Below are positions 14,195 through 43,600 of a stretch of 64,000 nt of DNA, piece by piece. The translations under genes were made by a program, and so were the position numbers. A model generated the notes under the pieces. The model was not told where the DNA came from and searched no databases. It saw only the letters and a program-made list of their open reading frames with translations. The DNA is taken from the NCBI RefSeq assembly GCF_031769215.1, contig NW_026781988.1, positions 310,001-374,000 of the forward strand, given 5' to 3'. The DNA comes from Ylistrum balloti (lineage: Eukaryota). The number at the start of each line of letters is the position of its first letter. The stretch's first letter is position 1.

Positions 14195-14476
14195 GTGGGT
14201 CACGTGTGGGCGTATTCCGCTGACATTCATAATGAAGAGTGTAGAATTATGCAAAGGTGTTTTTTTCTCTCAATGATTGAAATTGTAAGAAACGAGTGTT
14301 TTCAACATGGGAACTGCAGATTTGACAGCAATTTTCGGTATATGTGTCACATTCAATGAGCGTCTAAAAGGAAAAATAAACCCAATGAAGATTTTGCAAA
14401 AACCACACAAGTGAATAGTATCTTTAATGCAAATTTAGAGTCCGATACAGTTAGAGCCAAACCACGAATCAAACTG

Positions 14477-15524
14477 CATCATACAGCTTTTCCGTCCTTC
14501 TAGAACTCGTCAGTGAAGCTACATCATACAGCTTTTCCGTCCTTCTAGAGCCCGTCAGTGATGCTACATCATACAGCTTTTCCGTCCTTCTAGAACTCGT
14601 CAATGATGCTACATCATACAGCTTTTCCGTCCTTCTAGAGCCCGTCAGTGATGCTACATCATACAGCTTTTCCGTCCTTCTAGAACTCGTCAATGATGCT
14701 ACATTATACAGCTTTTCCGTCCTTCTAGAGCTCGTCAGTGAAGCTACATCACACAGCTTTTCCGTCCTTCTAGAACTCGTCAGTGATGCTACATCATACA
14801 GCTGTTTTGTCCTTCTAGGACTCGTCAGTGATGCTACATCATACAGCTTTTCCGTCCTTCTAGAGCTCGTCAGTGATGCTACATCATACAGCTTTTCCGT
14901 CCTTCTAGAGCTCGTCAGTGATGTTACATCATACAGCTTTTCCGTCCTTCTAGAGCCCGTCAGTGATGCTACATCATACAGCTTTTCCGTCCTTCTAGAG
15001 CCCGTCAGTGATGCTACATCATACAGCTTTTCCGTCCTTCTAGAACTCGTCAGTGATGCTACATCATACAGCTTTTCCGTCCTTCTAGAACTCGTCAGTG
15101 ATGCTACATCATACAGCTTTTCCGTCCTTCTAGAGCTCGTCAGTGATGCTACATCATACAGCTTTTCCGTCCTTCTAGAGCCCGTCAGTGATGCTACATC
15201 ATACAGCTTTTCCGTCCTTCTAGAACTCGTCAGTGATGCTACATCATACAGCTTTTCCGTCCTTCTAGAACTCGTCAATGATGCTACATCATACAGCTTT
15301 TCCGTCCTTCTAGAGCTCGTCAGTGATGCTACATCACACAGCTTTTCTGTCCTTCTAGAACTCGTCAGTGATGCTACATCATACAGCTTTTCCGTCCTTC
15401 TAGAACTCGTCAGTGATGCTACATCATACAGCTTTTCACACAGCTTTTCCGTCCTTCTAGAACTCGTCAATGATGCTACATCATACAGCTTTTCCGTCCT
15501 TCTAGAGCTCGTCAGTGATGCTAC
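14477..15524 (-). repeat. 45-bp satellite, 23 monomers; hammerhead-derived with mutated core (GGAA-AAGCUG instead of GAAA-CAGCUG)
   Basis: Reverse-complement unit CATCACTGACGAG(T/C)TCTAGAAGGACGGAAAAGCTGTATGATGTAG. Same family and flanks as 27541-28616, inverted. Explains ORF 14469..15632. Confidence 0.95.
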
Positions 15525-16832
15525 GGGCCTAAATTTCGAAGCCGATGAGGTGACTGAGGAAAATTCAAAGTGATCAAGATCTAGAGGGGAGGTGCACTTA
15601 CCCCAAAATTCAATTAATTCCTTAATTTTCATTTACCGATAATTTCATAACGGTGTCAAGAACATGTATATAATTTGTCTACGCGTGCGTGTGTAAACTG
15701 TATAAGGATAGGAGGATATTATAGACCCCTGTTTCATAGACTCATCATCTGTAGGACTCTCATCCTAGCACTTAATGTCCACTCAGGATCACAAACGGCC
15801 GTTCATATTTATGTCGAATAAATATGATTCCTTTTATCTACCAACCATGACCACAGGCTTATTTCGCAGTAGATAGAATACAATGACAATGACAGAACAT
15901 ATTTATTGCGAAAAAAACCGTTATTTAGAATTGTAGAAGAAAAACAATCAAAAAGTTCTACTAATAATGAAACGCGATGTTTATAGACAATTCTGCAATT
16001 TGTAAAGTTGTATCACAACAGGCAAGCTAAACCCATTTTAAGTAAAATTCCTGAAAATATTGCCGTTTCAAATCACAATGCATTGTAAAATACATAATAT
16101 ATTGCTAGATATAAATACGCTTTCCTACAACATTCAATATTGTAAGATATACGTCAGATACACTACAATTGGTAACGTTTGTCTCACAACTGTGTTGGAA
16201 TAGTGTTGTTAATTTCTTACATTCGATATGTACATGTTTGTCTCCTGTACGTTCTGTGTGTAATCTTCACTACTGATACACAACAGTATTCGATGTCCAC
16301 CAAAACGTTTGAGTTGCTCTATCGCATCCTTTTGCTAATGGTAAAGTCACGTGCATGTTATACACGTGTAAGGCACCTGCATGGGGCTTATTTATACCTT
16401 GTAATAAACCCATTTTACGAGTTCGACTGAGAAAATGAGATAATGCTGTTTTCCGATGGAAACTCGTTTTATTAAGATATTGTTTGGATACTTACGCCTA
16501 GAGCTGGAAACATACATATACAAAGTATCTTTTAAGAAATCTCTTAGCAGCAAATTGGCCTCGCAAGTTGGCTTGGAGTCACAAAAAGGCGCCAGCCCTG
16601 TACGTATCTGGGAAGACTCATCTTTGTATGAGGTCATTGAACTTCTAATATTATAAACCCTATTTTATATTTGCTATCCTGCTATTTCAACAAATTCACT
16701 AAGCGTAATCTTAAAGTTTTGTAGTGTGCTGTCGCTTTGCCAGATACCTTCCTTATCTTGAACACTGTGGTTTCCTAGCCTCAATGTATGGTTTATCTTT
16801 TTTTTTATTATTTCCCAGCATCCTTTGAAATC

Positions 16833-19800
16833 ATGGCGGTGGACGGTTGTGGGAAGTTTCTGAAGTATTCCATGTTTCTGTTTAACATCGTCATCGTGGT
16901 AAGTATTTGACACAACTTACATAAACTTTGTAACGCGTTTTGTAAATTTGTTTGTGATACGTGTTACAAAGGATACCTTGGTAACTGTTCCCATCAGTAA
17001 CTAGTACAAAAACCGGCAAAGCCATTTGGAGCGAGCGTAGTATTCCTACTTATATCTTTCATTTTGCGACAATAATAATTACACCTTAAGTTTAAGGAAA
17101 TCATCCTTCCTTTAATATTCTATTTATTGTATTTCTGGCTAGTCCATTGTATTTCTGGCTAGTCCATTGTGGTTCTGGCTAGTCCATTGTGTTTCTGGCT
17201 AGTCCATTGTGGTTCTGGCTAGTCCATTGTGTTTCTGGCTAGTCCATTGTATTTCTGGCTAGTCCATTGTGTTTCTGGCTAGTCCATTGTGGTTCTGGCT
17301 AGTCCATTGTATTTCTGGCTAGTCCATTGTGTTTCTGGCTAGTCCATTGTGGTTCTGGCTAGTCCATTGTATTTCTGGCTAGTCCATTGTGTTTCTGGCT
17401 AGTCCATTGTGTTTCTGGCTAGTCCATTGTGGTTCTGGCTAGTCCATTGTATTTCTGGCTAGTCCATTGTGTTTCTGGCTAGTCCATTGTGGTTCTGGCT
17501 AGTCCATTGTATTTCTGGCTAGTCCATTGTGTTTCTGGCTAGTCCATTGTGGTTCTGGCTAGTCCATTGTGTTTCTGGCTAGTCCATTGTATTTCTGGCT
17601 AGTCCATTGTATTTCTAGCTAGTCCAGTGTGGTTCTGGCTAGTCCATTGTATTTCTGCCTAGTCCATTGTGGTTCTGGCTAGTCCATTGTGGTTCTGGCT
17701 AGTCCATTGTATTTCTGGCTAGTCCATTGTATTTCTGGCTAGTCCATTGTGGTTCTGGCTAGTCCATTGTATTTCTGGCTAGTCCATTGTATTTCTAGCT
17801 AGTCCAGTGTGGTTCTGGCTAGTCCATTGTATTTCTGGCTAGTCCATTGTGGTTCTGGCTAGTCCATTGTATTTCTGGCTAGTCCAGTGTGGTTCTGGCT
17901 AGTCCATTGTATTTATGGCTAGTCCATTGTATTTCTAGCTAGTCCAGTGTGGTTCTGGCTAGTCCATTGTATTTCTGGCTAGTCCATTGTGGTTCTGGCT
18001 AGTCCATTGTATTTCTGGCTAGTCCATTGTGGTTCTGGCTAGTCCATTGTGGTTCTGGCTAGTCCATTGTATTTCTGGCTAGTCCATTGTGTTTCTGGCT
18101 AGTCCATGGTGGTTCTGGCTAGTCCATTGTGGTTCTGGCTAGTCCATTGTGTTTCTGGCTAGTCCATTGTATTTCTGGCTAGTCCATCGTATTTCTGGCT
18201 AGTCCATCGTGTTTCTAGCTAGTCCATTGCATTTCTGGCTAGTCCATTGTGGTTCTGGCTAGTCCATTGTGTTTCTGGCTAGTCCATCGTATTTCTGGCT
18301 AGTATTTCTGGCTAGTCCATTGTATTTCTGGCTAGTCCATTGTGTTTCTGGCTAGTCCATTGTGTTTCTGGCTAGTCCATTGTATTTCTAGCTAGTCCAT
18401 CGTGTTTCTGGCTAGTCCATTGTGTTTTATTGTATATCGTTTATCCTTTCGGATTATCTCTGTTTACATATACTAATCGCGTAAACTTGTTCAGTCAAAC
18501 TCTTGTTGTATGCACACATGATGAAGAGTCTTGGTGATCGAAATTATTTGTTACTATGTCCGCAGTGTTGCTATGTCCACCATGTTGCTATCCGCCATTG
18601 GCGCATAACATAACATCTTCATGACTGATAGTATGTGTGAAATTTTTCATTTTTTTTTTCGCGTGTTATCCTTAGGCCTTAAGCGGCCCCGTGGGTCTGC
18701 TCGAGCTATGCTCGCGATAGAATTGTTTGAGTTTTTACTTCTCCATAGTAATAACAATTTCAACAACATCACGAGCTCTTTGACATAGATCATGTGTACC
18801 TGTGTTATTGAGTATTATTTTTAATTCACCATTATGTGGAGTTGACACGATGTCAAAATGTTGAAAGATTCTACACATATACCTATGTCGATAGGGTTAG
18901 CGCGAGGTTGAAAGCGATTCTTGAACAACTGCAGTCTTCAAGGGAGATCGGTATGAAAATTCCTGACTTTCATCCTTCTACCGAAATAATTACCAGCTAT
19001 TTTTGAGGATTGACAGAAACATGCAGTATTGTAAACATAGATGTTTTTTTTTTTTGTTACAGATAGCGGGTTGTTGCTTAGTAGGGTTTGGTATCTACAC
19101 AAAGACCAATCATGTTGGAATAACACGTGTATCATCTGTTCTTGGCGGTAATCTCGTCGTCACCCTTTCCCTTCTCCTCATCATCGCCGGAGCCATCGTC
19201 ATCCTTCTCTCTTTCCTTGGCTGTTGTGGTGCCATCAAGGAAATTCGCTGCATGCTAGTAACTGTGAGTATGACATGGCTGTAAGTTCCTTTAAGTGACA
19301 GGCTCGCTGTCATTTCCCATCCATTCTATGTATGATTTCTTTGCATTCCTCTATGTCAATATGACGTCACTGTCAGCTAACCTCTTTTAGTGCCAGCCTC
19401 GGTATCTCCCTTTTATAAACTAGCCGTCTACATCAAAATGACGACACTACATGTTAGTGACAGCCTCGCTGTCATGTTTAATATGTTACTTTCAACTTTC
19501 CGTTGGCAAACTTCTGCGTCAGAATGATGTCACTACATGTTTGTGACAGCCTCAATATCATGTTAAATCTGTCAATGAAAACTTTTCGTTAGCAGTCCTC
19601 TGCGTCAATGTGACGTCACTACATATTTATGACAGCCTCGCTTTCATTTTTAATCTGCCAATGTAAACTTTTCGTTTGCAGTCCTTTGCGTCAATATGAC
19701 GTCACTGCATGGTTTTGACAGCCTCACTATCATGATAAATCTGTCAATGAAAACTTTTCGTTAGCAGTCCTCTGCGTCAATGGGACGTCATTACATGTTA

Positions 19801-22800
19801 GTGACAGCCTCGCTATCATGTTTAATATGTTACTTTAAACTTTCCGTTGGCAGTCCACTGCGTCAATATGACGTCACTGCATATAAGTGACAGCCTCGCT
19901 ATCATGTTTAATATGTTACTTTAAACTTTCCGTTGGCAGTCCTCTGCGTCAATATGACGTCACTACATGTAAGTGACAGCCTCGCTATCATTTTTAATCT
20001 ATCAATGTAAACTTTTCGTTGGCAGTCCACTGCGTCAATATGACTTCACTACATATAAGTGACAGCCTCGCTATCGTTTCAGAGTCTGTCGCGGTAAACA
20101 ATTAAAGGCTTTCCGCTGTCTGACCTTTATGTCGGCTAAAGAAGTTAGTCTGGTCCCAGGTTATCTGTGCTAAGACGATTAATCACTTGAGAAAATTCTG
20201 GGTTTTCTAACCTCACGCTATGTAGACGAAGGATATAAACGATTCTATTTATATATCATTACTCACCAACAATTGATGGTATTAAGGTAGTTTGGGAATT
20301 GACTGAGAAATCAATCAAGTTGCATTCTTCATTCCTATCTTATAATCAACAAAATGTAAAATTGAGTTTTTCGATAATTATGGTAACTGTATAGCGTATA
20401 GAGTAAATAAGTAACAGACCTTTCCATTAGGAGGTGGGGGGTGGGAGTGGGGGAGGGGGTGGGGGTGGGAGTGGGGGAGGGGGATGGGGGTGGGGGAGGA
20501 ATTTGGATCAATCTGAGACCACTGATTGATAAGCTTATTTTATCATGCTGACAACAAAAATACTTTAATTTGCTTAACAGTTACTCTTCCATCATGCCTA
20601 ATTCAAATTATGTATATTACTGTAGACGGATTTTATATAAGTGAGCAATAATTCAATTTTGGTAGTATACTTATTATGTATTGAATGTATTGTATATACG
20701 ACTGAAAAAAGTATTTGCTGAGCAGAAAACACAAATAATAGACTTTACACTCCAATATCACGTTTGTTCGAACTTTCCAGCACAAACATTAATTTATCAC
20801 CAAGAATCTCCATGATGGCCAAATTGGCACCCCACCTTTACCGTCAACTTTTCATATTTCTGTTACAGTTTTTCGTGTTGCTGTTTGTGATGTTCATGAC
20901 ACCCCACCTTTACCGTCAACTTTTCATATTTCTGTTACAGTTTTTCGTGTTGCTGTTTGTGATGTTCATAACACACCACCTTTACCGTCAACTTTTCATA
21001 TTTCTGTTACAGTTTTTCGTGTTGCTGTTTGTGATGTTCGTCGGTTTCGTGGTGAGCGCAGTACTGGTGTATGCATTCCGGGCAAAGGTACGTGAATCCA
21101 TGTGACATTTAAAAAGGCTGACGTTGAACACTAGTTTGCTACAATAGATTGTTTGAGCGTTAGAATGTTTGAACACCGGAACATTCACCTCTATGGAACA
21201 CTTGCTGGGTTTTCAGCTTGAAAACAAACACTACGTTAGGACCAAACATTACGTTTGCTGATGAAAACTGTTCTAGACTGTTTTCCACTATTGTGTTCTT
21301 TATGAGGTTTAGATATATGTCTACTTAACAGAATGGATTTATTATCGATAAGAACAGGCAATATCATGTTATATACCACTTGGATATCAAGGTCAAGTCT
21401 CAAGAGAAGGTCATAATGCCATGTATCACATAAACTTCAAGTTCAAAATCCAATGGTATACATTTATGCAAATCTATGTTTACTGTTTATGAAACAGTTG
21501 GATGGACCTCCTTTGAAGTTCTATCAACTTTTAACAATGATTCATTGACATGTTCTGAGAAGAAATCCGGAAACTAGAGACTAACGTTTAAACTTGTTGT
21601 TATACAATGTGTTTATATCTTTTACTTCAGATAGAAAAGTACACTTTAGAGCACCTGCGTGGGTCACTGTACAACGACTACGGGTTCGAACCCCAGGTCA
21701 CTGAGGCATGGGACTCCATGCAACAGATCGTAAGTACTCTGTTCAATGTCAAGATCACGCAGATTATTAGTACAAAATCTAATGTCAAGGTTACAGACTC
21801 GTACGCTTTGTGTAGATGAGTATCACAGGAATCAAGACTTATTGTATTTAAGTAAGGGCACGGTAATAGGAACTTAGATATATCAATCAATTATAACATT
21901 TAGCTATTCTGGGTCACAGGAAACCGTAAAAAGCTCTGAGACATGGGATAAGTTCAAGGTCAGGTAGACCAGTCCTTTATAAAGCAGCGCATGCTATCTT
22001 TTTCAATTCAAGGTCAATGAAAGTTTTCATCATGATTTTTTTTTTTTTTCGGATTCGTTTGTGCGTATATGGAACAAATGTATCTGTGACATAAATATGC
22101 ATAATTTTTGTAACAGTTTAAATGTTGTGGAGTGGAAGGAGACGTGAACTCCACCAGTTCCTGGGCCTTTTACAAGAAGCACTCGGCGTGGTTCCTTAAC
22201 CAGACAGGTATATCTCTGAAGCATGTTTAGCTATATCTGAATTTTGAAATCTGAACTCTAATAGCCCATCAGATCTCTGGCGTGGGTAGATGGTACGACA
22301 TGACTTGATGACTTGATGGAAAGCTAAGTATACTGTATATATCGTCCGTTATCTGATCGTTCACATCAGTCTTTGATAAATCAATTAATCTTGTATTCTT
22401 GCTACATACATAATATTCTGATATGAGTTGATTATATCTTTCCTTCTGATGTAAGATTTTGTTAAAACCGCCACAGATATCTTGATGACGCTGTATAGAT
22501 AATGACCATTGTGTGTCTTCAATCAACAGTGTGTAGTGTATTTAAAACAGACTAAGTGGCCTTGCCGGAGGTGCAGATCAAATAAAAATATGTTTTTTTT
22601 TATCCCTAGACTGTTAAATGTTTATGATGTGAGATTATGAAGAAAGTGTGATAAATTATCTTTTTGGCAGCAGGAAGTAAATGTTATCGGAAACAAAACT
22701 CTCTTTCAATCTGTTTTTCTTGGCTGTGTTATTATTAAGTTAAATGACGGATGATGAAATATAACCGCAGTCAAACCAGCTAATTTTATCTTTTATACTT

Positions 22801-25944: not shown

Positions 25945-27333
25945 CGTGCAGGATACATAAATATTTTAGTGATATTTTTCAATTTGGAACTTCCATACAC
26001 ATTATTTAATTCCTAACTAAATTTAGGTGGGTGAGAGTATTCTTGTAGTATGGAAACCGATTTAAGGCGGAATGTTCCATGTTGTACTACTTACAGTTAC
26101 AAAAGAGTTCTGTAAACTGTAATACTGCATTGTAAATCAGTATATGACACTTTTTAAACATATTTATTGACACATGTAACACTGCAGTGATTATTTGATA
26201 ATTAACGAGTTGTTGCGTATAAGGGGAGACAACGCCGTAGACTACCACTAATGGGTCGGTTAGCCATTGTATCATGTCTTCCAAACATTGTCTTTTTCCC
26301 GCATCCTCGACCCCAAGTGAAAAACGATAGTGTGATTTTCATGTGGGACCGAAGATGTTGAAATACTTTAGCACCACGATCCCACAGGGACCTGGCACGA
26401 ATGTCCAACTCTATGGTCCAAATTTATGTATTATTAGTAAACGGACAGTGAGAGTAGGCTTCCAAGCCGAGTCCCTGTGGGATATGGTATATTACTTGCG
26501 AATCAGAACAGTATCTAGTTGTTCTTGCTGAATATTATCAGTTTTTTTTCTTCTGGGACAAAACTTTGATCTAGTGGTTTACGGCTACTTGTGTTTCGGT
26601 AACCGATACAAAGTCTCGTGAACCAAACGTGCATTGGACGAGAGTAGAGATACGTATGGCAAGGTATTGGGGAATCAGTGGCTTATTCTTCATGGTGTAA
26701 TTTTTGTATATAAATGTAAATTTGTTCCTTGATTAAATTGTCTGTAGTGCATTGACTATTAAATACAAAGATGTACTGAATAAGATTCTTATCGTCATAT
26801 CTCGTTCTAGTACAATTTTATAAGATAGTATCCTTGTATTTTGGTATTGATGCCCCTGTTAGAAACGCGTAGGAATTTCCAACATTAATGTAGGTAAAAC
26901 AATTTTAGTTTGCAAAAAGGACAGAATTCGACATATGTGGCTTTTAGAACTGTTTTCAATAACGTCTAACTACTAGTGTATACAATGCAATTTATGAATG
27001 AAATGTGATATTGTGAATTATTGTGATGAATATTATTGTGTGTTTGTAAATCGTGCCCTGCACGTGATTGAGTGCCTTTTTGGTTTTGTACTATATCTTG
27101 TGGCGAGACAAGCTGCGTGATGTCATTAAAATGTGTGCATCGTCATCAAATTCTGTGTTGTTTATCCGATTCGCATTACCTACATGTTCAGCCCTATTTA
27201 CATATGTCATTTATTTTATATAGATCAAATCATTTTGTTGTTCTACAGTTACATGAATATTTAATTATAGAAACCGAATATATTACCTCATTACCAGCAG
27301 ACACCTGACCACATGACTCCAAGTCTTTGGGTT
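25945..27333 (+). repeat. ~1.35-kb duplicated block, copy A (copy B 37181-38515)
   Basis: Collinear similarity from GATACATAAATATTTTAGT to CTCCAAGTCTTT(G/C)GG. Each copy lies upstream of one DNase I gene. Confidence 0.9.
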
Positions 27334-27540
27334 TTTCCGCAAAATTTACTTCTTTCAGCAAGACACATGTTCATACATTTGAGCAACAAACCGAACGCCC
27401 CGGGGATAAGCTGTTGTTTCAAAAGTTAACGTGTCAAAATGATGCAGTCTGTCTCTCAGTCATGCTTTCCACAAAGCTATCTTTAAATTTCTTTGCATTT
27501 TCCTAACTTGCCTCTTAGGCTTCAAAATGTACGCCCTTAG

Positions 27541-28616
27541 CATCACTGACGAGTGGTAGAGGGACGAAACAGCTGTATGATGTAGCATCACTGACGACTC
27601 CTAGAAGGACGAAACAGTTGTATGATGTAGCATCACTGACGAGTGGTAGAGGGACGAAACAGCTGTATGATGTAGCATCACTGACGACTCCTAGAGGGAC
27701 GAAACAGCTGTATGATGTAGCATCACTGACGACTCCTAGAAGGACGAAACAGTTGTATGATGTAGCATCACTGACGAGTCCTAGAAGGACAAAACAGCTG
27801 TTTGGTGTAGCATCACTGACGAGTCCTAGAAGGACAAAACAGCTGTTTGGTGTAGCATCACTGACGAGTCTTAGAAGGACGAAACAGTTGTATGATTTAG
27901 CATCACTGACGAGTCCTAGAAGGACGAAACAGCTGTTTGGTGTAGCATCACTGACGAGTCCTAGAAGGACGAAACAGCTGTATGATGTAGCATCACTGAC
28001 GAGTCCTAGAAGGACAAAACAGCTGTTTGGTGTAGCATCACTGACGAGTCCTAGAAGGACAAAACAGCTGTATGATGTAGCATCACTGACGAGTCCTAGA
28101 AGGACGAAACAGCTGTTTGGTGTAGCATCACTGACGAGTCCTAGAAGGACGAAACAGTTGTATGATTTAGCATCACTGACGAGTCCTAGAAGGACGAAAC
28201 AGCTGTTTGGTGTAGCATCACTGACGAGTCCTAGAAGGACGAAACAGCTGTATGATGTAGCATCACTGACGAGTCCTAGAAGGACAAAACAGCTGTTTGG
28301 TGTAGCATCACTGACGAGTCCTAGAAGGACAAAACAGCTGTATGATGTAGCATCACTGACGAGTCCTAGAAGGACGAAACAGTTGTATGATTTAGCATCA
28401 CTGACGAGTCCTAGAAGGACAAAAAAGCTGTATGATGTAGCATCACTGACGAGTCCTAGAAGGACGAAACAGTTGTATGATGTAGCATCACTGACGAGTC
28501 CTAGAATGACGAAACTGTTGTATGATGTAGCATCACTGACGAGTCCTAGAAGGACGAAACAGCTGTTTGGTGTAGCATCACTGACGAGTCCTAGAAGGAC
28601 GAAACAGCTGTATGAT
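27541..28616 (+). ncRNA. Tandem array of 24 x 45-nt hammerhead ribozyme monomers
   Basis: Monomer CAUCA-CUGACGA-GUCC-UAGAA-GGAC-GAAA-CAGCUG-UA^UGAUG-UAG matches the hammerhead consensus (C3UGANGA9, G10.1-C11.1, G12AA, A15.1-U16.1, H17). Eleven monomers have an intact core. Catalytic activity untested. Confidence 0.85.
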
Positions 28617-31479
28617 ACAGTTTGATTAACTGTATGGCTCTACTGTAAATTTGTATCAAAAAGTACTATTCATTTGTGTGTCGTTTGTACAATCTTCGAA
28701 ATATTCATCACTCACGACACCATTTTCTACTAAGAATGACGTACAACGTTCTGTCATCTGCAGTAAAGCCAAGTTCTATTCACATTGAGAAAAGTATGGA
28801 CACAGACGGTTTTCTGAATTCAATGTGATTTTCTTAAAAATTACACTCAATTACATATGATTGAGGGAATGAAAAAATTGGTATGACTTCATACAGACAT
28901 TCTCTGTACTAGCTGTAAGGATAAGAAAAATAGATTACTGCATGTTTGAAACTCTCTGAAATGGATAGTCACTCGCTTGCTATTAAGTGAAGATAATGAG
29001 TGTACAGGTCACCTTACAAGCATAGGATAGTGGGAATGTCTCTTTAGTAGAGTGTCCGGCTACAGAGCACAGGGTCGTTATTTCGGTGGCAAGGTATTTT
29101 TCAATAATCCTTTAAATATCAAATATCGTACCATTTACCATTCCAAAGGTAGAAGCTACAGGATATTGAGATGCTTCCTTGGAGATATTAAGCTTGGGTT
29201 GTTGTTGTCATCGAGGTCGGAGACTTTGTGAAGGAGGAAGTAGTGTAGAGAGAAGTTGAGAATGCAGGGAATTTACCTTTGGTTCAACATTACAGCCTAC
29301 AGACCGAAGGGTCGCTAGGTCGAACGGTCCAACGGTGGCAGATTGTTTTCGTTACTTCCTCCTAGTGGCCGAATGCCGAATTTTTAACACCATGCTACAT
29401 CATATTAGCTGTATAATGCAGTTTAATTCATTGTCTTGTCCTGTCTTACCATATCTTATTTAAATATGTTTTAAACAGTGCCATTAAATGGTGTCTTTGG
29501 CACTGTCTTTCTTTCCATAGTTTACAATTTTATATTAATAATAAATTTTAATTTGTGACTTAACTATTTCATACAATTGTTATTTATGATAAAACGCGGA
29601 ACTATACTACTGGCTGACGTCAGCATTAGGTTAAGCGGTTTAAACGATGTAATCCTGATTTCTTTCTATTGTTTTTAGAGATATTTGAGAACGGAAATAT
29701 GGTTAAAAGAATATGTTACCAAATGTGGTTTACAGTTGATATGAAGCCAGGAGGAAGATAAAAAAAACGGACACCATGGATATTTAAATGGGACCATATT
29801 TAAAGGCTTTTTTTTTTATAAATATACTTGTTTTGTATAATGAACCTTGAGAAAAATACCCTTGTGTCACATTGTTGTGTAATTATATCTCAGTTCCTTG
29901 TTACAGTAAGATAAGGGACATTGTGATTTTTAAATTCCTTTTATCAGTCACCAATCCGAGTCTGGTGTTACAGTCTGGTCTTGCGCATTGGCTCACTGTA
30001 GAGATACACTTTCCAAGCATTTCGAGCGCACATACGCCGGTAAGTGTAAGTCCAATTTCCATTTGTTGTACAAATATCTACCTGTATATATACAGATCCT
30101 TCGGGTGCATTGCTATAGTGTTAGCTGACAATTTATAATGTTATCAACCAAATTGCATTTGAATTCCCAGGGTGGTAATGTTGTCCACGATACATTAAAC
30201 AATATACCTCGAAGTCACCTGAATTTTATACGTAAAGATCGACTGAAAAATTACTCTATACAGTGTTTAATGATCAGCTATAATACAGGGAAGATAAATT
30301 TTACACATACAAAAGAAACGAAGATATTATCATGTATTGGAAAAATGATATTTAAAGCACATATAATTCTGGAAAGTTTAAAGATAAAATGAGTTTTGAT
30401 GATAGGTGCTGCTAGGAAAGGGGTGTGTAGTTCTTGAATATTCCCTTGTATATTTGATCAATACCGCAGTTGTCTTACACTCGGATCTCAATACTGTCTA
30501 GGGACAGGAAGCGTTCTCTGCTGTTAGCCAATTTCTTTTTACTATGCTTACATGAGATACTGATAATTCACTCCGTACAGTCTTTATCATATCTTCCATA
30601 TGCTTTACTCAAATATTATGATCAATTATTCATATACTTCTGTTTAATCCTTGACAGAACGTAATTCAGAAACACAGAATTCATACTTCTCGTTAGATTA
30701 GGTGGTGTGCAGAAAGTTGTTCAATATCGCATATCCAAAAGACACTTCAAGGGAGGAGCGGATGTTTAAGAACGATCAAAAGCATACGGTCGTCATTGTG
30801 AATTCATTTAGAAAAAGTCTATATCCGTGCGCGATATGAAGCTATACGCGTTTGATTCTGCACTGGTTGCGTTGTTGAATACCTTATTCTCGTTTGACAA
30901 CGTGACGTAATTTCTTGAATTGGGCTCGATAAAATATCGGGTGTCGTCGTCGTCGTCTTCTGAAACACATGGTCTTATTCTCCTCATACAATTTTCGCGG
31001 GTTTCCAAGTGATTTTTTTCATATTTTGCCTGGGTTAATAAAATGTATAATCGATTTAGGATTTGAATTGAGCTTCTGTTGACGGAACTATCTTTGTTCT
31101 TTTCGAAAAACTCATCAATGGTCAGATAAACCTGGGTTATCTTGATCTAGATATGTTTTTGCACGCGACATCTGCATTGCGAACAAGGAAGTAGAACGCC
31201 TTATCTGCAAGCACATCCATATATTTATATTCAATCGAAGTGTAAAATTCGACATCTGGATCAGAAAAAATAAACTGGTGAGTTTTTTTAGAATGCCGAA
31301 CTTATTGATTAACCTGCACACGATTTTGGCCATGCTCTACGGTATCCATGAATATCTTCATTGGCGTAGCTCCTCGATATCCTAAAACTTTTAAGATTAT
31401 TTTAGCGCCAAATTTGTGTATGAAGAGGAAAACTGACAAAGTCCGAAATAAAGTTGTTGAAGTCACTGAATTCCACACA

Positions 31480-31487
31480 TGACGTCA
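31480..31487. promoter_or_regulatory. CRE palindrome in the conserved upstream block of DNase I copy A
   Basis: TGACGTCA, conserved at 40495-40502 in copy B within a near-identical ~170-bp block. A candidate short 5' UTR exon donor TG|GTAGGT follows. Confidence 0.45.
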
Positions 31488-31648
31488 CAAGGCGTCAGGG
31501 TCAAGTCCCGGATTGAAGATCACACAACTTAGTTGGTAGGTGGAAGGACTGTGATGGTATCCCTGCTTTCCCTACTTGACACCAACAAGGTTCACGATGG
31601 GTTGGTTTTCTGTTAAGGATGATGATCGATATTATCAATGTTTTTCAG

Positions 31649-34600
31649 ATGAAGCAGATGACGATGTACTTCCGGCTTGTCCTCTTGCTCTCCATAGCTA
31701 CCGTGGGACTGTGTAACCTGAAAATCGCCTCCTTCAACATCAAATGGCTCAGTGTCAACAAACTGTCCAACAACGAAACAATGACTATCATCAAAAAGGC
31801 ACGTGAGAACAGCATCATATTGCGTTGAAAACGTTTCGCATTTTACATTGATCATATCTACAAGTCACAAGACATGACATTCCCTCAGAAGTGACTTTGC
31901 GTCGTCGTTACCTCAAATTCATCTCTTAGAGATACATAATAGAACATCATTAAATAAACAGGGTAAATACACCCCCTTCCTATATTTTACATAATACTTG
32001 TTTAGAACGGTTTGTCAATTTCTTGCTCGTCTCCTGGATTTTTCATTCTTTAACCCCCCTTAACTCCCAGGAATTTTTAATGAAACTGAAGTAAAAATCT
32101 GTCATTTTGCTTCAACATTAATTTTCACCTTTTTCCAGTTTTTGGTAAGCAACCCTTGGATATTTAGAAATATGGGAATACAAGCGTTATAAATTTTAAG
32201 TCTCCATCATCACTGAAGAGTCTTAGAAAGGCTTAACAGCTGAACTATGCTGTATAATCCATGGTATATATCGCTAACTTAAACTAAATTGTAGAAAAGA
32301 ATGATATCCAAATATGTTTCTGTTACATATTACACTTATCCTCAATCTAAAATCATAATGATATTTCAATACTATACCATAACCAAACACAATCTTAACC
32401 TATTTTTGAAATTCCAGACCATGGACTGGACATGAAATAAAAATGCTGTAAATCTGCTATAGGTTATCGAGAGATATGATATAATCTCCATTCTCGAGGT
32501 GAGAGCAGACAATTCCATCCACATGCTGATGCAGAATCTCAACATGTAAGTCACCTTATTACCAAAGTTTTATCTGAAATTCTGGTCTCAAGAAGATACG
32601 CAGACAATCCCATACCTGCATTTACACCATTAAATATCAAAGATGTCGGAGACGATGCCGGTAGCATTGGTATCACTAAAGCAACTTTATTTCTTGCAAA
32701 ATTTCCATAGATAGAACTTTATTCAGAGGTCGACTACAAAACTAACTCGGATGAATTCGTGATTCGAAGGTCAAGGTCAAGGTCATAGTAGCTACATATA
32801 GAAATTTCTCAAGCACTGTATGAATTATAATACTTCCGGTAACGAAGATATATAAGTCCTTCGAACATGGGATTTTCCGGATAGAATGTAAGACTAAAAA
32901 TACTTCATGTGTTTCCAAGCGTTTATAAGATGTCAACATCAAGAGAAAATTCAATGTAAGAAGGTCATTGATATTCGAGATATAATTCGAGATTTTCATA
33001 GATAAATGCGATAGATAATGATTTTTACTATCTTCTATCTGTCGCCTAGGGATAATCGGGATAACCCGTACGGCGTAGTGTTGAGTAAGAAGCTGGGGCA
33101 TAGCGTACATTACACGGAATCGTATGCCATCCTCTTCCGGTAGGTACACACTAGTATTATCACTACGTCACATCGACGGGATCCGAACTTGTGTTGTGCC
33201 AATTATTCAGATCTCTCGAATTAATTTGAATAATTCCGAATGATTGATTGTTTGTATTTTGGTGTAGTAAGTCATAATTGTGTTTTAACGACAGAATAAA
33301 TAACGTGTTTGTACAAGAGGTATATCAGTTCCCGGATCAGGATGACGTATTTGCACGAGAACCATATGCTGTCATGTTCCATTCTCTCGACTCACGTGAG
33401 TGTTACGTTCACGACAAACCATATCTTCCAACAAGATGTCGATAAAAGTACCGTTGATATAACAAAGAACCAAATCTCCAGGTCAGATCGAAGATTTATG
33501 AGTAGTAATTAAATAATAATACATTGAATAAGTTATATTATAATAAAACATCAAGAACCGATATAACACACGCGCACAAACATTCATTTATTCCACAAAC
33601 ACATTTCCACGTGTCTTTATCATGACAACAGCCACTAAGACCTGTTGACCACCATGTTCTCTGGCTGTCTGCCATTGGTGTGTAGTACATTCAATAGTTC
33701 ATATCATAATCAATCATTGAGAGCTGACATACACACTCACAATCACCATAGTCATCCACTCCACACACACATTTCCACATGACCTTATCCTGATGACAAC
33801 TTCTACTACTGGTTGTCAACCATGTTTCTTGGCTCACTACATCTTCTTTCTTCAGGCCCTGCCAACTTTGTGTACATCGTGCTCCATACACAGCCAACAA
33901 ACACCCCCGCTGAGTTGGAACACATGGTATCTGCTTACGACAACATCGCCAATTTCATGGGGAATCAGGTAAAAATCAGGGGAAATATCAAACTTCACCT
34001 CTGTGTGATATAGGCAATGATATCTGACCCAGATAATTCGATAACTATCCGGATTTCCGAATGTTGTCAGTATTTTTTGTATCTTCCCAGAACGCGCTTA
34101 TAGCTGGGGACCTGAATGCTGACTGTCATTACCTATCTCAGACAAGCCACGACCATAACCGTCTCTACACAGACAAACGCTTCACATGGCTCATCGACAG
34201 TGACGTCGACTCCACTGTGTCTACCGGTACCGACTGCGCTTACGACAGGTATCAGTGTTGATGATACTTAGCGAACTCAAACACCGGTCTGATGATGATA
34301 TTTTTTAACTCGCATTATAGATTTATCATATCGCTGATGTTTTTTTAGATATGAAAGTTTGCCGAAAGTACTAAATGGGTTCGATCAAGAGAGATTTACA
34401 CTAAAATTACTTCGACATGATCTCTGTTCCGTCCATTTTGTTAAGGTTACACCAATAGGTTATGCACCTCCAGCGGAGAAGAGTGCTGACAACAATACAC
34501 AGTAAATCATTTCTATTGGGATTTTGAAAATTGTCGATTTATATTTAAACTTCCCTTGGTTGACATAATCGTCTCAATAATACTTGTTTATTGCTTATAT

Positions 34601-35503: not shown

Positions 35504-36472
35504 AATAAATGAGAAGAAAGACATTCCTTTCGCAAATCAGTCTGTTCACTGACATGTACATGTAAACACAGCTTATATAAAGAATCCCTTGCTACAAAAC
35601 GATGTTTTTGAGTCGTGTTTTATTTTTAAATATTTTTTTAGATAAAACGTCATATATCACTTAAATTGCCAAAACATCCAAAAATTGTACATAATCTACC
35701 CAAAAAAATGCAAACTGCCCGAAATCCCTAAGAGATCATGTCAAACTTCCATTGACAATATCGTGTCGGTGATGAAATTCCATTTTTCATTCACAGAGAT
35801 TTTATTGAAAGACAAAATGTGTATTGGGCAACTGGCTAAAGTCTCTCCCTCGTAATGCCATTCCATCTTGTTTAGCTGCTTTTTATAGCCGATTTCTGTT
35901 TCTCGTGGCCAAGAAACTTGACTTTTCCATGCAGACATTTCGTTTAGTTTCACCAATAAAAATGCTTGTCGTACTCAATACTTATTCTGAAAATTGTTAA
36001 AGTTTACCGAAAATGAAAGCATCTTTTCTTTGCTTCTCCCTGAAAGAATCGGAGATTTCGATGATGATGTCATGCGAAATGAGATTTACAATTTAACAAT
36101 GGAAAAAAAGTGTCGCAATGTGAAAATTAGACAGGTTAATCCGTTGTAATATTACCACTCTTAAAAATTTTTAAAAAACCAGACAATTAAACTAATAAAC
36201 AATAAGGGGAGGTAATGGAAATACACCCGTTTGCCCACCCGTGATCCAGGAACTATGACAACAGGACTACTGTAAATGTATTTATAAAGGTTTTATTTAA
36301 GAAAGACACGTACAAATAAAATTCACTTAGCAACAAATTACGTGAGAAATGTGTAATTTCTAGCATAATCTTTTTATATCGTGGAAAGTTTGGCTATTTT
36401 TGCGGTTGAATTCCAGTTTTAAAATCTAAAAAAAAAAACATTGAAAAATAGGACGAAGATACCTCAACTCCA

Positions 36473-36967
36473 AGAAACTTCTTCATATCTTTAGCTGTTG
36501 GTCAACATCTAGAAACTTCTTCATATCTTTAGTTGTTTGTCGACGTCTAGAAACATCTTCATATCTTTAGCTGTTTGTCAACTTCTAGAGACATCTTCAT
36601 ACGTTTAGTTGTTTTTCAACGTCTAGAAACATCTTCATATCTTTAGCTGTTTTTCAACTTCTAGAAACATCTTCATATCTTTAGCTGTTTTTCAACTTCT
36701 AGAAACAGCTTCATATCTTTAGTTGTTTGTCAACGTCTAGAAACATCTTCATATCTTTAGCTGTTTGTCAACTTCTAGAAACATCTTCATATCTTTAGCT
36801 GTTTGTCAACTTCTAGAAACATCTTCATATCTTTAGCTGTTTGTCAACTTCTAGAAACATCTTCATATCTTTAGCTGTTTGTCAACTTCTAGAAACATCT
36901 TCATATCTTAAGCTGTTTGTCAACTTCTAGAAACATCTTCATATCTTTAGCTGTTTGTCAACTTCTA
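36473..36967. repeat. 38-bp minisatellite, ~13 copies
   Basis: Unit AGAAACATCTTCATATCTTTAGCTGTTTGTCAACTTCT. Confidence 0.97.
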
Positions 36968-37180: not shown

Positions 37181-38515
37181 TCGTGCGCAAGATACATAAA
37201 TATTTTAGTCATTTACATCATTTAATTCATTACTATATCTAGCTACGGTGAGAGTAATCATATAGTATGGAAACCTATTTAAGGAGAAATATAACATAAA
37301 CCTTGTTATACTGCTTCATTCCAAAAGAGTTCTGTACAAAGAGACTTTTCAAACGTGTACAGTACATTGTGTTACATGCATTATATGATGAAACTTTTAA
37401 AAGTATTTATTGACACATGTAACACTGCAGTGATTATTTGATATTTAACTATTGAAAACATGTACAAACACTATGAGTTGTTGCGTATAAGGGGAGACAA
37501 CGCCGTAGAATATCACTAATGGGTCGGTTAGCCATTGTATCACGTCTTCCAAACATTGTCTTTTACCCGCTTCCTCGACCACAGGTAAAAAAACGATAGT
37601 GTGATTTTCATGTGGGACCGAAGATGTGTTACCCGAAGACAGAAGCATTCTAAGGCACAGGTACTTTAGCACCACAATCCCACAGGGACCTGGCACGAAT
37701 TTCCAACTCTATGGTCCATATTCATGTATTATCAATAAACGGACAGTGAGATTAGGCTTCCAAGCCGAGTCCCTGTGGGTTACGGTATATTACTTGCGAG
37801 AGTTATCTATTTTTTCTTGTAAGATAAAAGCAGTTAATATTCTTCCAGAATAAAACTACAGCAACTTTTTTCGGTAACTGATACAAAGTCTCGTGAACCA
37901 CACGTGGATTGGACGAGAATAGATACCACAGGTGGTCATGTATTGAGTAATCAGTGGTAAACTTATCTATAGAATGTGTTGTTTATAGATGTAAAGTATA
38001 TGTCTACTGAGAAATATCGTCTTATCCCGTTCTAGTACATTTCTTGTATTCTCGTACTTCGGTATTGAAACCTATATAGGAAATACATAGGATTTTTTTA
38101 ACATTAATGTAAGTAGTTCAAAAACAACAGATGTCGAATTCAGTGACATCTAAAACTGTTTTCAATGATTTCTAATTACAAGTATATTCAATGCTATTTA
38201 TGAATAAAATGTGATATTGTGTAATATAGTGATGAAGCGGCAAGACAAGCTGCTTGATGTAAATAAAATATATACATCGTTATCTAAGTCTGATTCGGAT
38301 TACAAACATAGTCGTTTTTAGTACAACATACATACATGTAAATTATGTTATAAAGATCAAAATATCATCATTCTACGTCTGATACATGGGTATTTAACGA
38401 TAGAAACCGAACGTGCTTCTTTTTATAGAAATACTACGCTCATGCACAGGAGTAGCCTACATGCATGGCAGTCAATGCAGGACCACAGCCCATCTGGCTC
38501 CAAGTCTTTCGGGTC
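37181..38515 (+). repeat. ~1.35-kb duplicated block, copy B
   Basis: See 25945-27333. Confidence 0.9.
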
Positions 38516-40494
38516 ACTTGAAAAACGTTTTATGTAAGTGATAATGGCGTTGACGGACATATAAATGGATTCTACAGTAAAAGTTTAAATATCTGTAGTC
38601 ACCATTTTACAATGTATAGTAGTAGCCTTATCTCATTTTCCTAATTTCTTAGTTAGTGTGAGATGTTGTAGTAAGCCATAGTTTGCTTGTGACATCGTGA
38701 TTGTATATAATTGTTATCTGTAGTTGAAGTCTTGTCAAAGGCACTGACTCACATCAGAGATAAGTTTCTCACGAATTGAGATGACCCATACGCCAGGGAA
38801 TGTAAGTCCATTTTCTGTTACACGCCTATATCTGTTTAATGAATCTACCGATGTACGAATCCGTCGTGTTGATTACTATTGTGATAACAAAACGGTCACA
38901 TTACACATCACATTTTAAAACTGAATGAATTACTGGGACGGCAATTTGTATACTATACAAGGCACAACATAATTCCATAACTGAAACTGTTTTTTTTTTA
39001 AATATCACCCAATAGGAATATCCGAAGGTAGAGGTTAAACGATAGGTCAATTTGTTCTCCGTTAAATAATAAAATGTAACACAGAAAATCATACAACACA
39101 AAAGATTATTTTTTGTCTCGCCCTGGACCATCTACAGTTTGGAGGGTTTGAGAGTTTTATGAAATGGATTTTCACGTCATATGCAGCCCAGATATTCAAT
39201 ATTCCCCCGGATGTATAAACCACACTATAACCCTCCTACACTCCCGGTTCCTGTCCGAGGAAGGAATTCTTCTCTATTGACAATGTACTATTGTATGTAC
39301 GCTTAGTGTTTGCCTAAGCAATATGATGATAATTCAAAAGAATTTCACCACGTGATCCTTTGTCATGTTTTTTTTTTCACCTTTTATTTTCCGAAATCCT
39401 GCGATTCGTTATTTTTCTATTCCTTAATAGGACACCTGTTAGAAAAGGAGAAAACATGCATCCCTTTAATTTAGAAAGTAGTGTGATGGCGTATTGGGAT
39501 AAGATGTTTCATAGTACATAACCATAGCCTATTTCAGAGGAACGAATATTCAGGACTGCTCAAAAGTCCCATCAACACCACTTCAGGAGCGAGAATGTAT
39601 TACCATAGTATATGCTTTATTCATCCGGTTGTGCTAAGAATAGAAGAAAGGAGTTTGGATTAGACAAGATACATCATCTAGTCAAGCAAATGATTCTTGT
39701 AAATTTTGATAATCCAATACCAATATGGTGGTCGGTATAGCCAGTGTCATCTGTTAGGTAGGACAGCATATCAGCATAATGCGCTCAAAGAAAAAATATG
39801 CGGAGGACGAAACGAAATCTATTTCAAAAAATAATAATTCTGGTTGTTATTGACTCCAATATCTTTCTGGTATACTTATGGGAACATTCTATGCCCGTTT
39901 TTTTTTTGTCTGATTTGCTTTTGTTTTCTAACTAGACTGACTTTATCAAAGAGATTTCACTTTCAGAAATATTGATGATGTGTCGACTATAGATCACAAG
40001 ATCATAGTACATCGTTACATACATATCAGAATTAAAACTCAAAGGCGATTGTTTTATTCGTATTTTGCTCTATTATTCTCATTAACATTATTAGTTAAGA
40101 TTGTTCTTATAAAAAAACTCGGCAATGTTCAGATAAACCTCTGCTGAGTCTAGATGTATTTTGAAAGTAACAGAAACAAAACACCTTATCTGCAGGCACA
40201 AACATAAAATTATGTCATTTCGAATATTCGTGTATAAAATTTGACATCAGAATCAGGAAATACAACCTTTCGTTTTTGGTTTAAGAACACCTAGAATGCT
40301 TAATTGAATCCATCAATATCTTTATTGATTTAGCTTCTCGATTACCTGTATAAATAAATAAATAAATGAATAAATAAAATGAAACTTCAATAATTTTCAG
40401 ATCACCGGTTCCTTCTCATCAAAGTTGTTTAAAGTTTATTGAGATAATAAGAAAAACATTGAAAAAGACAAAATTAAGTCGTTGAATCTACACA

Positions 40495-40502
40495 TGACGT
40501 CA
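40495..40502. promoter_or_regulatory. CRE palindrome upstream of DNase I copy B
   Basis: TGACGTCA in a block shared with copy A. Confidence 0.45.
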
Positions 40503-40664
40503 CAAGGCGTCAGGGTCAAGTCCCGGATGGAAGATCACACAGCTTAGATGGTAGGTGGAAGGACTGTGATGGTATCCCTACTTTCCCTTCTTGACATCGA
40601 CAAGGTTCACGATGGGTTGGTTTTCTGTTAAGGATGATGATCGATATTATCAATGTTCTTTTAG

Positions 40665-43600
40665 ATGAAGCAGATGACGATGTACTTCCGGCTTGTCCTC
40701 TTGCTCTCCATAGCTACCGTGGGACTGTGTAACCTGAAAATCGCCTCCTTCAACATCAAATGGCTCAGTGTCAACAAACTGTCCAACAACGAAACACTGA
40801 GTATCATCAAACAGGCACGTGAGAGTTTCAGCATTATCTTGCGTCGCAAACGTTTTGCATTCTATATTTATTTCCCAAATTTAAGTTACAAGACATCGTG
40901 CGTCATTTCCACCTCTTCACAAAAGTATTTACTACAACTGACTCTGCGTTGCTCATATCGCATATTTATCTTGCAGAGTTATATGATATGAACAAACATG
41001 GTTAATGTACCTGCCTTCCTATATTTTACCTATGTCTCATTTGTTAGGACTTTTTGTCAAGCCTTGCTCTGCTCTTGGATTTTCACTCCTTCAGTCTTCC
41101 GCATCACTGACGAGTCCTAGAAGGGCTTAACAACTGTACGCTGCTGTTTAATGCATTATACGGTATAATACTGAAACTGGAACTTGTAGAGAATGGTATT
41201 ATCTAGTCGTGTTTCTGTTGTACATATTATACTGATCCCCAAATATCATGAGACTTCTATACTATACAATTACCAAACACAATCTCAATCTTTTGTTCCT
41301 GTTGAAATGCCAGACCAATAAACTGGACAGGAAGTAAAAGTGTGCTATAAATTACATCCATGCTGAAAATTATACAAATGTATTACATAATCTCGTTATT
41401 GTAGATATTACAGAGGTATTATATAATACAGAGATATTATATAATCTCCTTCCTTGAGGTAAGGGAAGACCGTGCCATCTTCTGTTGTAGATAATACAAA
41501 GGTATGATATAATTTCCATCATCGAGGTAAGGGACGACCATGCCATCCACATGTTGGTGCAGAAACTCAATATGTAAGTCACAGACTTCACACTATAATA
41601 ATAACATCGGAATTCTGGTCTCAAAGGTCGACAATAACAATACATGTATGAGCTCGTGTTTGCGATAGTTACTTGTGCTATGAATATTCTCTGCAATGTA
41701 TACTAACGGTAACCAAAGACAGACGTAATTGCGTCTTCCTGTGATAAATGCACCTCTTAGTCAGAGCAAAGAATTTTCCCTAGAAAATACATCAAATTTC
41801 ACTTAACCAAGAATTTAAAGGTTATAGAAAGGTCAGTGAAGACAAAGACATTCTAAACAATGGGTAAACATATGCGGTTTTATTATTTATAATTGATATG
41901 GTTTATACGATAATGATATTTCCAACTGTCGTCTAGGGATAATCGGGACAACCCGTACGGCGTAGTAGTGAGTAAGAAACTGGGACGTAATGTACACTAT
42001 ACAGAATCGTATGCCGTCCTGTTCCGGTAAGTACATCCTAGTATTATCACTACGTCACATCGACGGGATACGAACTTGTGTCGCGCCAATTATTTGAACT
42101 TCTCGGCTAACATCATACTTTCGATTGACTGAAACAATAAAAAAAACTTTGGGGTTTTAAGAATCATAATTACTTTTATATAATTCCGAATGACTGGTTG
42201 TCAGTACGGAATACGAATTTGTGTTGCGCCAATTATTCAAATATCTCGGCTTACATTGTACTTTGATTTAAGAATAAGAATTACTTTTAAATAATTCCGA
42301 ATGATTGATTGTTTGTATTTTGGTGTAGTAAGTCATAATTGTGTTTTAACGACAGAATAAATAACGTGTTTGTACAAGAGGTACATCAGTTCCCGGATCA
42401 GGATGACGTATTTGCACGAGAACCATATGCTGTCATGTTCCATTCTCTCGATTCACGTGAGTATTACAATTACTATCTACCATATCTTCCAACAAGATGT
42501 CGATAAAAGTACCGTTGATATAACAAAGAACCAAATCTCCAGGTCAGATCGAAGATTTATGAGTAATTAAATAATAATACATTGAATTAGTTATATTATA
42601 ATAAAACATCAAGAACCGACATAACACACACGCACAAAAATTCATTTATTTCACACAAACATTTCCACATGTCTTTATCATGACAACAGCCCCTAGGACG
42701 TGTTGACCACCATGTTCTTTGGTTTACTACCATGCAAATGGAGCCTTGAAATCATCTTTCTCTTTCAGGCCCTGCCAACTTTATATATATTGTGCTCCAC
42801 ACACAGCCAACAGACACGCCCGCTGAGCTCGAACACATGGTATCTGCTTACGACAACATCACCAATCTCATGGGGATTCAGGTATGACGTCATATCAGAA
42901 ATTATCAAACTTTCATCTCTGTGTGCTGTTGACCAATAGAATCTTTCATCCTCTTGGTGGTAAGATAGGTGGATCTCAACCCGAGAGGAAAGATTATTCA
43001 GTTAGCAAGCACAAGGCTAGCCAATTGTTAACAATTTAAACATATTTTTCCCGGGGTTCAGATCACACTATCTTACCAACGAGGTGGTGAATGCTTGTCT
43101 TTCTTTCCTCTTGACTTTATTAGGTACTTGTGTGTGTTTTTCTTGTCCAATTGTTTCTCATCGTTGACGTGACATCAGAGAATAGTTGCTGTCAGGTTCT
43201 AGCATTGTCCTGACAGGGGAATCCCCCTGTCTAAATCTTGGGGTGCAATAAGGAAATCTTATAATGGCAGAAAGCTTGGATTTACATGTCCAGGGTAAGA
43301 GAAAATTCTATCTTATTCAGAGACTTGATGATAATCTAGATTTCCGAATGTTGCCAGTATTCTTGTATCTCCTCAGGACGCCATTATAGCTGGGGACCTG
43401 AATGCTGATTGCCGTTACCTGTCTCACACGCGCCACGACAACAACCTTCTCTACACAGACAAACGCTTCACGTGGCTCATCGACAGTGATGCCGACTCCA
43501 CTGTGTCTACCAGTACCGACTGCGCTTACGACAGGTATCAGTGTTGATGGTTCTTAGCGAACTCAGACACAGGTCTGATAGTTCTTATCTCTCATTATAT

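Follow-up and report, generated by a model that had tools for sequence, protein, structure and literature searches.

A 45-nt minisatellite built of type I hammerhead ribozyme motifs without a spacer

Array 2, a tandem repeat on the plus strand of the window (the whole 64-kb stretch of DNA analysed here), is a retrozyme-type hammerhead satellite compacted to zero spacer, in which every 45-nt unit has the form of a type I hammerhead. Animal hammerhead repeats are understood as retrozymes, that is, as a ribozyme joined to a few hundred nt of circularising cargo; here the period is the ribozyme itself, which makes the array a limiting case of the retrozyme design. A related array on the minus strand (array 1), flanking sequences common to both arrays and two decayed solo monomers lie in the same window. 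Taken together, these features make it likely that array 2 is the amplified ribozyme module of a small, dispersed, non-coding element that bears a hammerhead and is either retrozyme-like or Penelope-related. The features are as follows.

27541-28620, plus strand: array 2, 24 type I hammerhead units, all 45 nt long; 12 canonical
14474-15520, minus strand: array 1, 23 units of the hammerhead type of array 2; all predicted to be inactive; Hammerhead_3 matches below threshold
27491-27540, plus strand: leader of array 2, about 50 nt, ending in ...GCCCTTAG directly before the first unit; also at array 1
15521-15570, minus strand: leader of array 1, from window self-blastn and flank alignment
28621-28697, plus strand: trailer of array 2, about 80 nt; also at array 1 and, weaker, at the solo monomers
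14387-14473, minus strand: trailer of array 1, from window self-blastn and flank alignment
41101-41152, plus strand: solo decayed monomer with core GGGCTTAACA and a related downstream flank, in the second copy of a DNase I-like gene
32208-32254, plus strand: solo decayed monomer with a related trailer, at the paralogous position in the first DNase I-like copy, downstream of exon 1

Anatomy and integrity of the repeat unit

Read in register from 27541, array 2 falls into 24 units of exactly 45 nt each, with no insertions or deletions, and ends at 28620; Tandem Repeats Finder reports 27538-28616 with a period of 45, 24.0 copies, 92% matches and 0% indels. The consensus is CATCA CTGACGA GTCC TAGAA GGAC GAAA CAGCTG TA TGATG TAG. 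Helix I (5-6 bp) is formed by CAUCA with UGAUG or with UGGUG (one G-U pair), the core CUGACGA is followed by a 4-bp helix II (GUCC/GGAC) with the loop UAGAA and then by the GAAA strand, and helix III consists of two pairs, A15.1-U16.1 and C15.2-G16.2, which close the self-complementary loop AGCU; the palindrome at this helix is ACAGCUGU. H17 is A or U, giving a GUA or GUU site, and UAG forms a 3-nt linker to the following unit. Cleavage is predicted 3' of unit start +36, for example at 27982 and 28252. The original prediction, made from the letters of this DNA, had described 24 head-to-tail units whose monomer is essentially a full hammerhead with these helices, a GUA site and this palindrome. 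The in-register split and Tandem Repeats Finder confirm the number and orientation of the units, Rfam and the unit anatomy confirm the hammerhead motif and place it in type I, the unit quoted for 27946-27990 is exact to the letter, and H17 does lie at both of the positions after which cuts had been placed.

Five units of array 2 match Hammerhead_1 (RF00163) in an Rfam cmscan at or above the gathering score of 34, with 34.3-36.1 bits and window-wide E-values of 2e-5 to 9e-5. At E<=1 on a 1.4-kb stretch, the same model matches about 20 units (18-20), the 15 besides the top five scoring 19-33 bits, and Hammerhead_3 (RF00008, the permuted type III form) matches at E<=1 at three positions across unit boundaries with at most 43.8 bits (gathering score 48.5). 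If up to three mismatches are allowed, the window holds 31 occurrences of the 31-nt core consensus, all of them within the two arrays, and seven units match it without mismatch. Chance resemblance was ruled out by an expectation of 0.00 such core matches over 100 shuffles and by Rfam E-values near 1e-5. A whole-window Rfam scan at E<=1 finds no hammerhead outside the two arrays, the solo copies being too decayed to score. The open reading frames of 335 aa and 387 aa that extend over the arrays were rejected as genes for a repeat protein: they are a trivial outcome of a 45-nt (15-codon) period with one stop-free frame, and their translation has no match in a collection of 5.8 billion proteins.

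Canonical units were defined by the rejection rules of Perreault et al. 2011 (PMC3088659), under which a unit is rejected if any of C3, U4, G5, A6, G8, A9, G12, A13, A14, A15.1, U16.1 or H17 is altered, or if a pair adjacent to the core is mispaired. The earlier implication that all units carry the full set of hammerhead elements stands for 12 of the 24 units of array 2; it fails for the remaining 12, which carry G12A (seven units), a G10.1C mispair (three) or a broken helix II (two). Array 1 contains no canonical unit among its 23. Nearly all of them combine A13G with C15.2A (GGACGGAAAAGC), and several add A9G or C3U. In established hammerhead biochemistry, both G12A and A13G abolish activity. 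Under the canonical rules for core and stems, half of the units of array 2 and all units of array 1 are predicted to be inactive. Mutations are about as frequent at core positions as elsewhere.

Shared flanks, solo monomers and array growth

The array, which the original prediction had called a satellite, is not a free-standing one, as leader and trailer recur at array 1 and the trailer, in weaker form, at the solo monomers. Window self-blastn aligns 27491-28697 with 15570-14387 at 83% identity over 1218 columns; both arrays begin and end in the same phase, with about 50 nt upstream and about 80 nt downstream in common. Shared sequence ends after about 1.2 kb, so the arrays represent a single array-bearing unit present twice, in opposite orientations and at a distance of 12 kb. 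The recurrence of leader and trailer around array 1, and of the trailer beside the solo monomers, suggests that the array is an expanded module within a dispersed element. The window holds two full copies of this element, from which its ends are not definable, and no precise empty site or target-site duplication can be read there, the paralogous DNase I-like segment being only about 70% identical. The trailer of both arrays starts with a short inverted repeat right after the last unit (28613-28640, and 14460-14495 on the minus strand), which at array 2 is the hairpin ACAGTT-TGAT-TAACTGT; the carrier element may have a conserved hairpin here. Inspection of the leader by eye ruled out a Pol III A/B-box promoter: there is only a weak B-box-like GGCTTCGAA, at array 1, and its spacing is wrong.

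The two arrays flank a plus-strand tetraspanin gene with exons at 19.0-25.45 kb. Array 2 is intergenic, 2 kb downstream of this gene and 3 kb upstream of exon 1 of the DNase I-like gene (31619-31828, plus strand), and its ribozyme sense is the strand of both neighbours. The DNase I-like gene region is tandemly duplicated (25999-27278 / 31094-32398 versus 37215-38411 / 40101-41288); the copies are about 70% identical in non-coding sequence and 91% over exon 1 (31460-31875 versus 40476-40896), and downstream of exon 1 both contain a decayed solo hammerhead, at matching positions. These paralogous positions indicate that insertion of a single ribozyme predates the gene duplication. LINE-like retroelements with Exo_endo_phos and RVT_1 domains lie at 46259-51279 (minus strand) and 56250-61087 (plus strand), and the Exo_endo_phos (APE) domains mark the reverse transcriptase ORFs of the window as LINEs, not Penelope-like elements. 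With both of these ORFs being APE-type LINEs, the window contains no autonomous Penelope-like partner; neither array has an ORF with reverse transcriptase plus GIY-YIG nearby, as a Penelope pseudo-LTR would, and telomeric repeat tracts are absent from the window. At least six unrelated minisatellites are present in the window, at 9072-10004, 17126-18427, 19433-20075, 36464-36967, 6009-6560 and 20828-21039, with units of 16, 20, 86, 38, 51 and 72 nt, up to 65 copies and arrays of up to 1.3 kb. The region is unusually rich in short-unit arrays, and these other minisatellites suggest that the genome readily expands short units.

Within array 2, a dead-dead-live-live-live-live pattern recurs with a 270-nt period, which is a 6-unit higher-order repeat, and unit identity peaks at lag 6 (270 nt) and at lag 2. 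The presence of A13G plus C15.2A in nearly all units of array 1 suggests that a non-cleaving variant spread through that array. A relic unit of array 1 at 14833 (minus strand) is identical to the G12A unit type of array 2, which suggests that the common ancestor of the two was already an array with dead units. Another unit of array 1, at 15430-15475 (minus strand), has a 12-nt internal duplication (GAAAAGCTGTGT/GAAAAGCTGTAT), which explains a 57-nt unit and the 57- and 102-nt periods given by Tandem Repeats Finder. From the 6-unit block duplications, the dominance of a dead variant in array 1, the shared end phases and the identical G12A unit, we infer that the arrays grew through unequal exchange or conversion of DNA, whether or not the units could cleave. 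This reading rests on a handful of variant events, which point to amplification without selection for catalysis. Judged by its core and stem residues, the ribozyme system is half decayed at array 2 and dead in array 1.

Predicted processing, related species and rival readings

A lone unit can form at most 2 bp of helix III. For a dimer, both the MFE and the centroid fold are a nested double hammerhead with a helix III of 8-10 bp (MFE -30.4 kcal/mol, z = -3.66 against 200 shuffles): the ACAGCUGU palindromes of both units pair with each other, a hairpin across the unit boundary, UG(A/G)UG-UAG-CAUCA, provides the inner helix I, and the outer helix I joins the first CAUCA with the last UGAUG. The earlier proposal that neighbouring monomers form an 8-bp helix III agrees with this predicted fold. 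For a 6-mer of the consensus, the energy is -32.5 kcal/mol if all units fold as type I monomers, -46.6 kcal/mol if they form consecutive permuted type III hammerheads with a helix III of 4 bp, -73.0 kcal/mol for adjacent double hammerheads and -93.2 kcal/mol for the nested MFE fold; the cores remain three-way junctions in all four. Every favoured predicted fold of multimers is a set of double hammerheads with an 8-bp helix III. During transcription the permuted form should be completed first, given that the boundary hairpin and helix II both form locally; in it, the core of unit n+1 would cut the site of unit n, and a site beside a dead core could still be served by the neighbouring core. According to Cervera and de la Pena (PMC4209133), the canonical type I hammerheads of metazoans show weak activity as monomers but work as tandem dimers; in vitro, cleavage by minimal and dimeric hammerheads of animals is poor (PMC4209133, PMC6765202).

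Based on the shared flanks, the variant patterns and the predicted folds, we propose the following hypothetical sequence of events, in which (i) a carrier element would have consisted of a leader of about 50 nt, one hammerhead and a trailer of about 80-110 nt; (ii) its hammerhead module would have been amplified to a 45-nt minisatellite, each unit being one complete canonical metazoan type I hammerhead; (iii) this amplification would have occurred at the DNA level, by unequal exchange or slippage, and the arrays would later have been copied as arrays; (iv) in a plus-strand transcript, the ACAGCUGU palindromes of two units would pair to give an 8-bp helix III and double hammerheads or, in the co-transcriptional alternative, a permuted type III hammerhead would form with helix I closed by the UAG linker; (v) the RNA would be cut after GUA or GUU where one of the two cores able to serve the site is intact; and (vi) the products would be multiples of 45 nt with 5'-OH and 2',3'-cyclic phosphate ends. 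The original prediction, with its 45-nt ladder and possibly tiny circles, reached too far on activity.

The RNA evidence consists of contigs assembled from related species, which carry neither strand nor read-end information and have no DNA control. RNA-library contigs of three related species (organisms C, E and F) contain the unit, presence in a library not being equivalent to transcription; the source species (organism A) is represented only by runs labelled DNA or unlabelled. In run X24 of organism C (a 173-Mb library labelled 'RNA?'), summed k-mer depth reaches up to 65,305 on the last unit, with 4,835 in the initial 47 nt of the trailer. Such a depth, on window 28575-28668, would amount to about 1-2% of all letters, comparable to the share published for mussel retrozyme circRNAs, provided that the library really is RNA. 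Run X18 of organism E, which is declared RNA-Seq, has a summed k-mer depth of about 100-150. The contigs of organism C, which have loose ends, hold a solo unit after ...TTTTGGCCCCTAA and before CAGTTAAATTCATTTTTTTGG, with flanks resembling those in the window. The contigs of organisms E and F carry head-to-tail units in which T-CCCTAA replaces TAG, with a 49-nt period (on window 27943-28306). These contigs show that the ribozyme-only tandem arrangement also exists in related species. CCCTAA corresponds to one TTAGGG telomere unit read in reverse complement; as a sign of a telomere-related module it is a lead only, being one hexamer, noticed post hoc and not found in the units of the window.

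A rival reading is that the arrays are pure fossils, ordinary minisatellites that arose from a hammerhead-bearing repeat in a genome that expands short units everywhere, never processed as RNA and with no role at the RNA level. The other minisatellites of the window (at least six, unrelated, with units of 16-86 nt) are in line with it, as are the 12 dead units among the 24 of array 2, the 23 of 23 in array 1, the decay of the solo copies and a mutation rate at core positions close to that elsewhere in the unit. A fossil, however, would not be expected to have a repeat period of exactly one whole ribozyme, as array 2 has, or seven units that match the 31-nt core consensus exactly; nor does it account for related species that keep tandem ribozymes with a different linker, or for the unit in their RNA libraries, once at very high depth. 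On balance we regard this reading as possible, though rather unlikely. If the arrays are merely decaying minisatellites, they would be a well-documented curiosity and not a new mechanism.

Two readings give RNA circles a central part. According to the more far-reaching one, the 45-49-nt unit would be a self-sufficient cargo-less retrozyme, the smallest ribozyme-only mobile unit, whose transcripts cut themselves co-transcriptionally, each new 45 nt yielding a hammerhead that cuts one period upstream; the 45- or 90-nt products, once ligated to circles, would template rolling-circle reverse transcription by a Penelope- or telomerase-like enzyme, and the CCCTAA of sister species would be left over from telomere-primed addition. 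We consider this quite improbable. The narrower one, a minimal cargo-less retrozyme with circles of 45 or 90 nt whose arrays were born or extended by rolling-circle reverse transcription with a Penelope-like enzyme, fits the canonical type I architecture of animal retrozymes, which spread via circRNAs and tandem repeats (PMC7229834), the predicted double-hammerhead geometry that juxtaposes the ends of two cleaved monomers, and the abundance of the unit in the putative RNA library of a related species. It is nevertheless highly improbable in our view: both arrays have the same leader, trailer and phase at both ends, array 1 is homogenised to a non-cleaving variant, the 6-unit block duplications indicate DNA exchange, and circular and tandem junctions are indistinguishable in the contigs. 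Barely credible is the idea that the arrays consist of stacked 3' ends, each with an extreme 5' truncation, from an endonuclease-deficient Penelope-like element (Athena/Terminon type), whose module of hammerhead and reverse-complement telomeric repeats would have been joined time and again to a chromosome end or break that later came to lie internally: such elements do use this attachment module and have been described in head-to-tail arrays of 5'-truncated copies (PMC6431247, PMC8557442), organisms E and F join units by T-CCCTAA directly after the ribozyme (in contigs with loose ends and 4-nt insertions) and the solo unit of organism C is preceded by ...GGCCCCTAA (at loose contig ends), but the linker in the window is TAG, not CCCTAA, the match elsewhere is a single hexamer found post hoc, the window has no telomeric tracts, and the conservation of leader and trailer is at odds with serial addition at an end.

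The amplified module of a dispersed hammerhead-bearing element remains our preferred reading. The arrays would offer a natural test of the minimum sequence that such repeats need to persist and spread and of double hammerheads at zero spacer, and would reveal whether cells hold 45-nt RNAs that are phased and end in a cyclic phosphate, or circles of very small size. With a half-dead array, a fully dead array and solo copies, a single 64-kb window offers a clean system in which DNA-level satellite dynamics could be told apart from RNA-level selection.

Comparison with known hammerhead repeats

Animal hammerhead repeats have been reported at 150-450 bp or about 300 bp, and the circRNAs of such repeats at 170-400 nt (PMC7229834, PMC7761336), which bears out the earlier statement that known monomers measure a few hundred nt and makes a spacer-free unit of 45 nt unusual. 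Our search of the searchable literature for all-ribozyme repeats below 60 nt, covering arrays, minisatellites and tandem hammerheads, found no earlier report, and the novelty of a 45-nt all-ribozyme satellite is therefore probable, if not certain. Identity with the Mytilus retrozyme was ruled out, as its hammerhead sequence differs (supplement of PMC7229834). The exact 31-mer has 0 matches in metagenome and viral contigs, and a generic pattern of two cores 40-50 nt apart retrieved 93 loci from public contigs, all of them coding or due to chance; these public collections are mostly microbial, and the null result therefore says little about animals.

In endonuclease-deficient Penelope-like elements and Terminons, the 3' end is a hammerhead with reverse-complement telomeric repeats directly after it (Arkhipova et al. 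2017, as summarised in PMC6431247 and PMC8557442). The same order of a hammerhead and then a reverse-complement telomeric repeat is seen only in the 49-nt CCCTAA variant of the related species. Unlike the Terminon 3' module, this variant has a single hexamer, which is absent from the units of the window, and there is neither telomeric context nor an associated reverse transcriptase.

The minimal hammerheads of Penelope elements (PMC4209133) share with the unit described here their animal type I form, the dimers expected through the helix III palindrome, and massive dispersal, mostly as solo decayed copies. However, the Penelope motif usually has no helix III and a helix II of 6-8 bp with a bulge (PMC4209133), whereas the unit has a helix II of 4 bp and a helix III of 2 bp with a tetraloop. 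Penelope hammerheads are spaced about 3 kb apart, within pseudo-LTRs on either side of an RT/GIY-YIG ORF; in array 2 the spacing is zero, and no Penelope ORF is nearby.

The closest comparators are the metazoan non-LTR retrozymes and the classical satellites, namely newt satellite 2, Schistosoma Sm-alpha and cave-cricket pDo500 (Cervera and de la Pena 2020, PMC7229834). In its helix sizes (I, 5-6 bp; II, 4 bp; III, 2 bp plus a palindromic tetraloop), the unit agrees with the canonical metazoan type I hammerhead (PMC4209133). Like array 2, retrozymes and classical satellites have type I ribozymes with a helix I of about 6 bp, a helix II of 4 bp and a helix III of 1-2 bp with a small palindromic loop, by which two tandem copies can form a double hammerhead; they, too, are non-coding and range from head-to-tail dimers to large multimers, with solo copies alongside. 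In contrast to the present unit, which at 45 nt is all ribozyme without cargo and lies well below 150-450 bp, the ribozyme of retrozymes is a minor part of a unit of that size, and a self-paired cargo forms the body of the circRNA. Retrozyme arrays are repeated whole elements, whereas array 2 lies inside one leader and one trailer. Expression as monomeric RNAs, both linear and circular, is a further trait of retrozymes; the present unit occurs in RNA-library contigs of related species, at high depth in one. What array 2 has in common with retrozymes is a short, palindrome-capped helix III in head-to-tail repeats, here in 24 copies.
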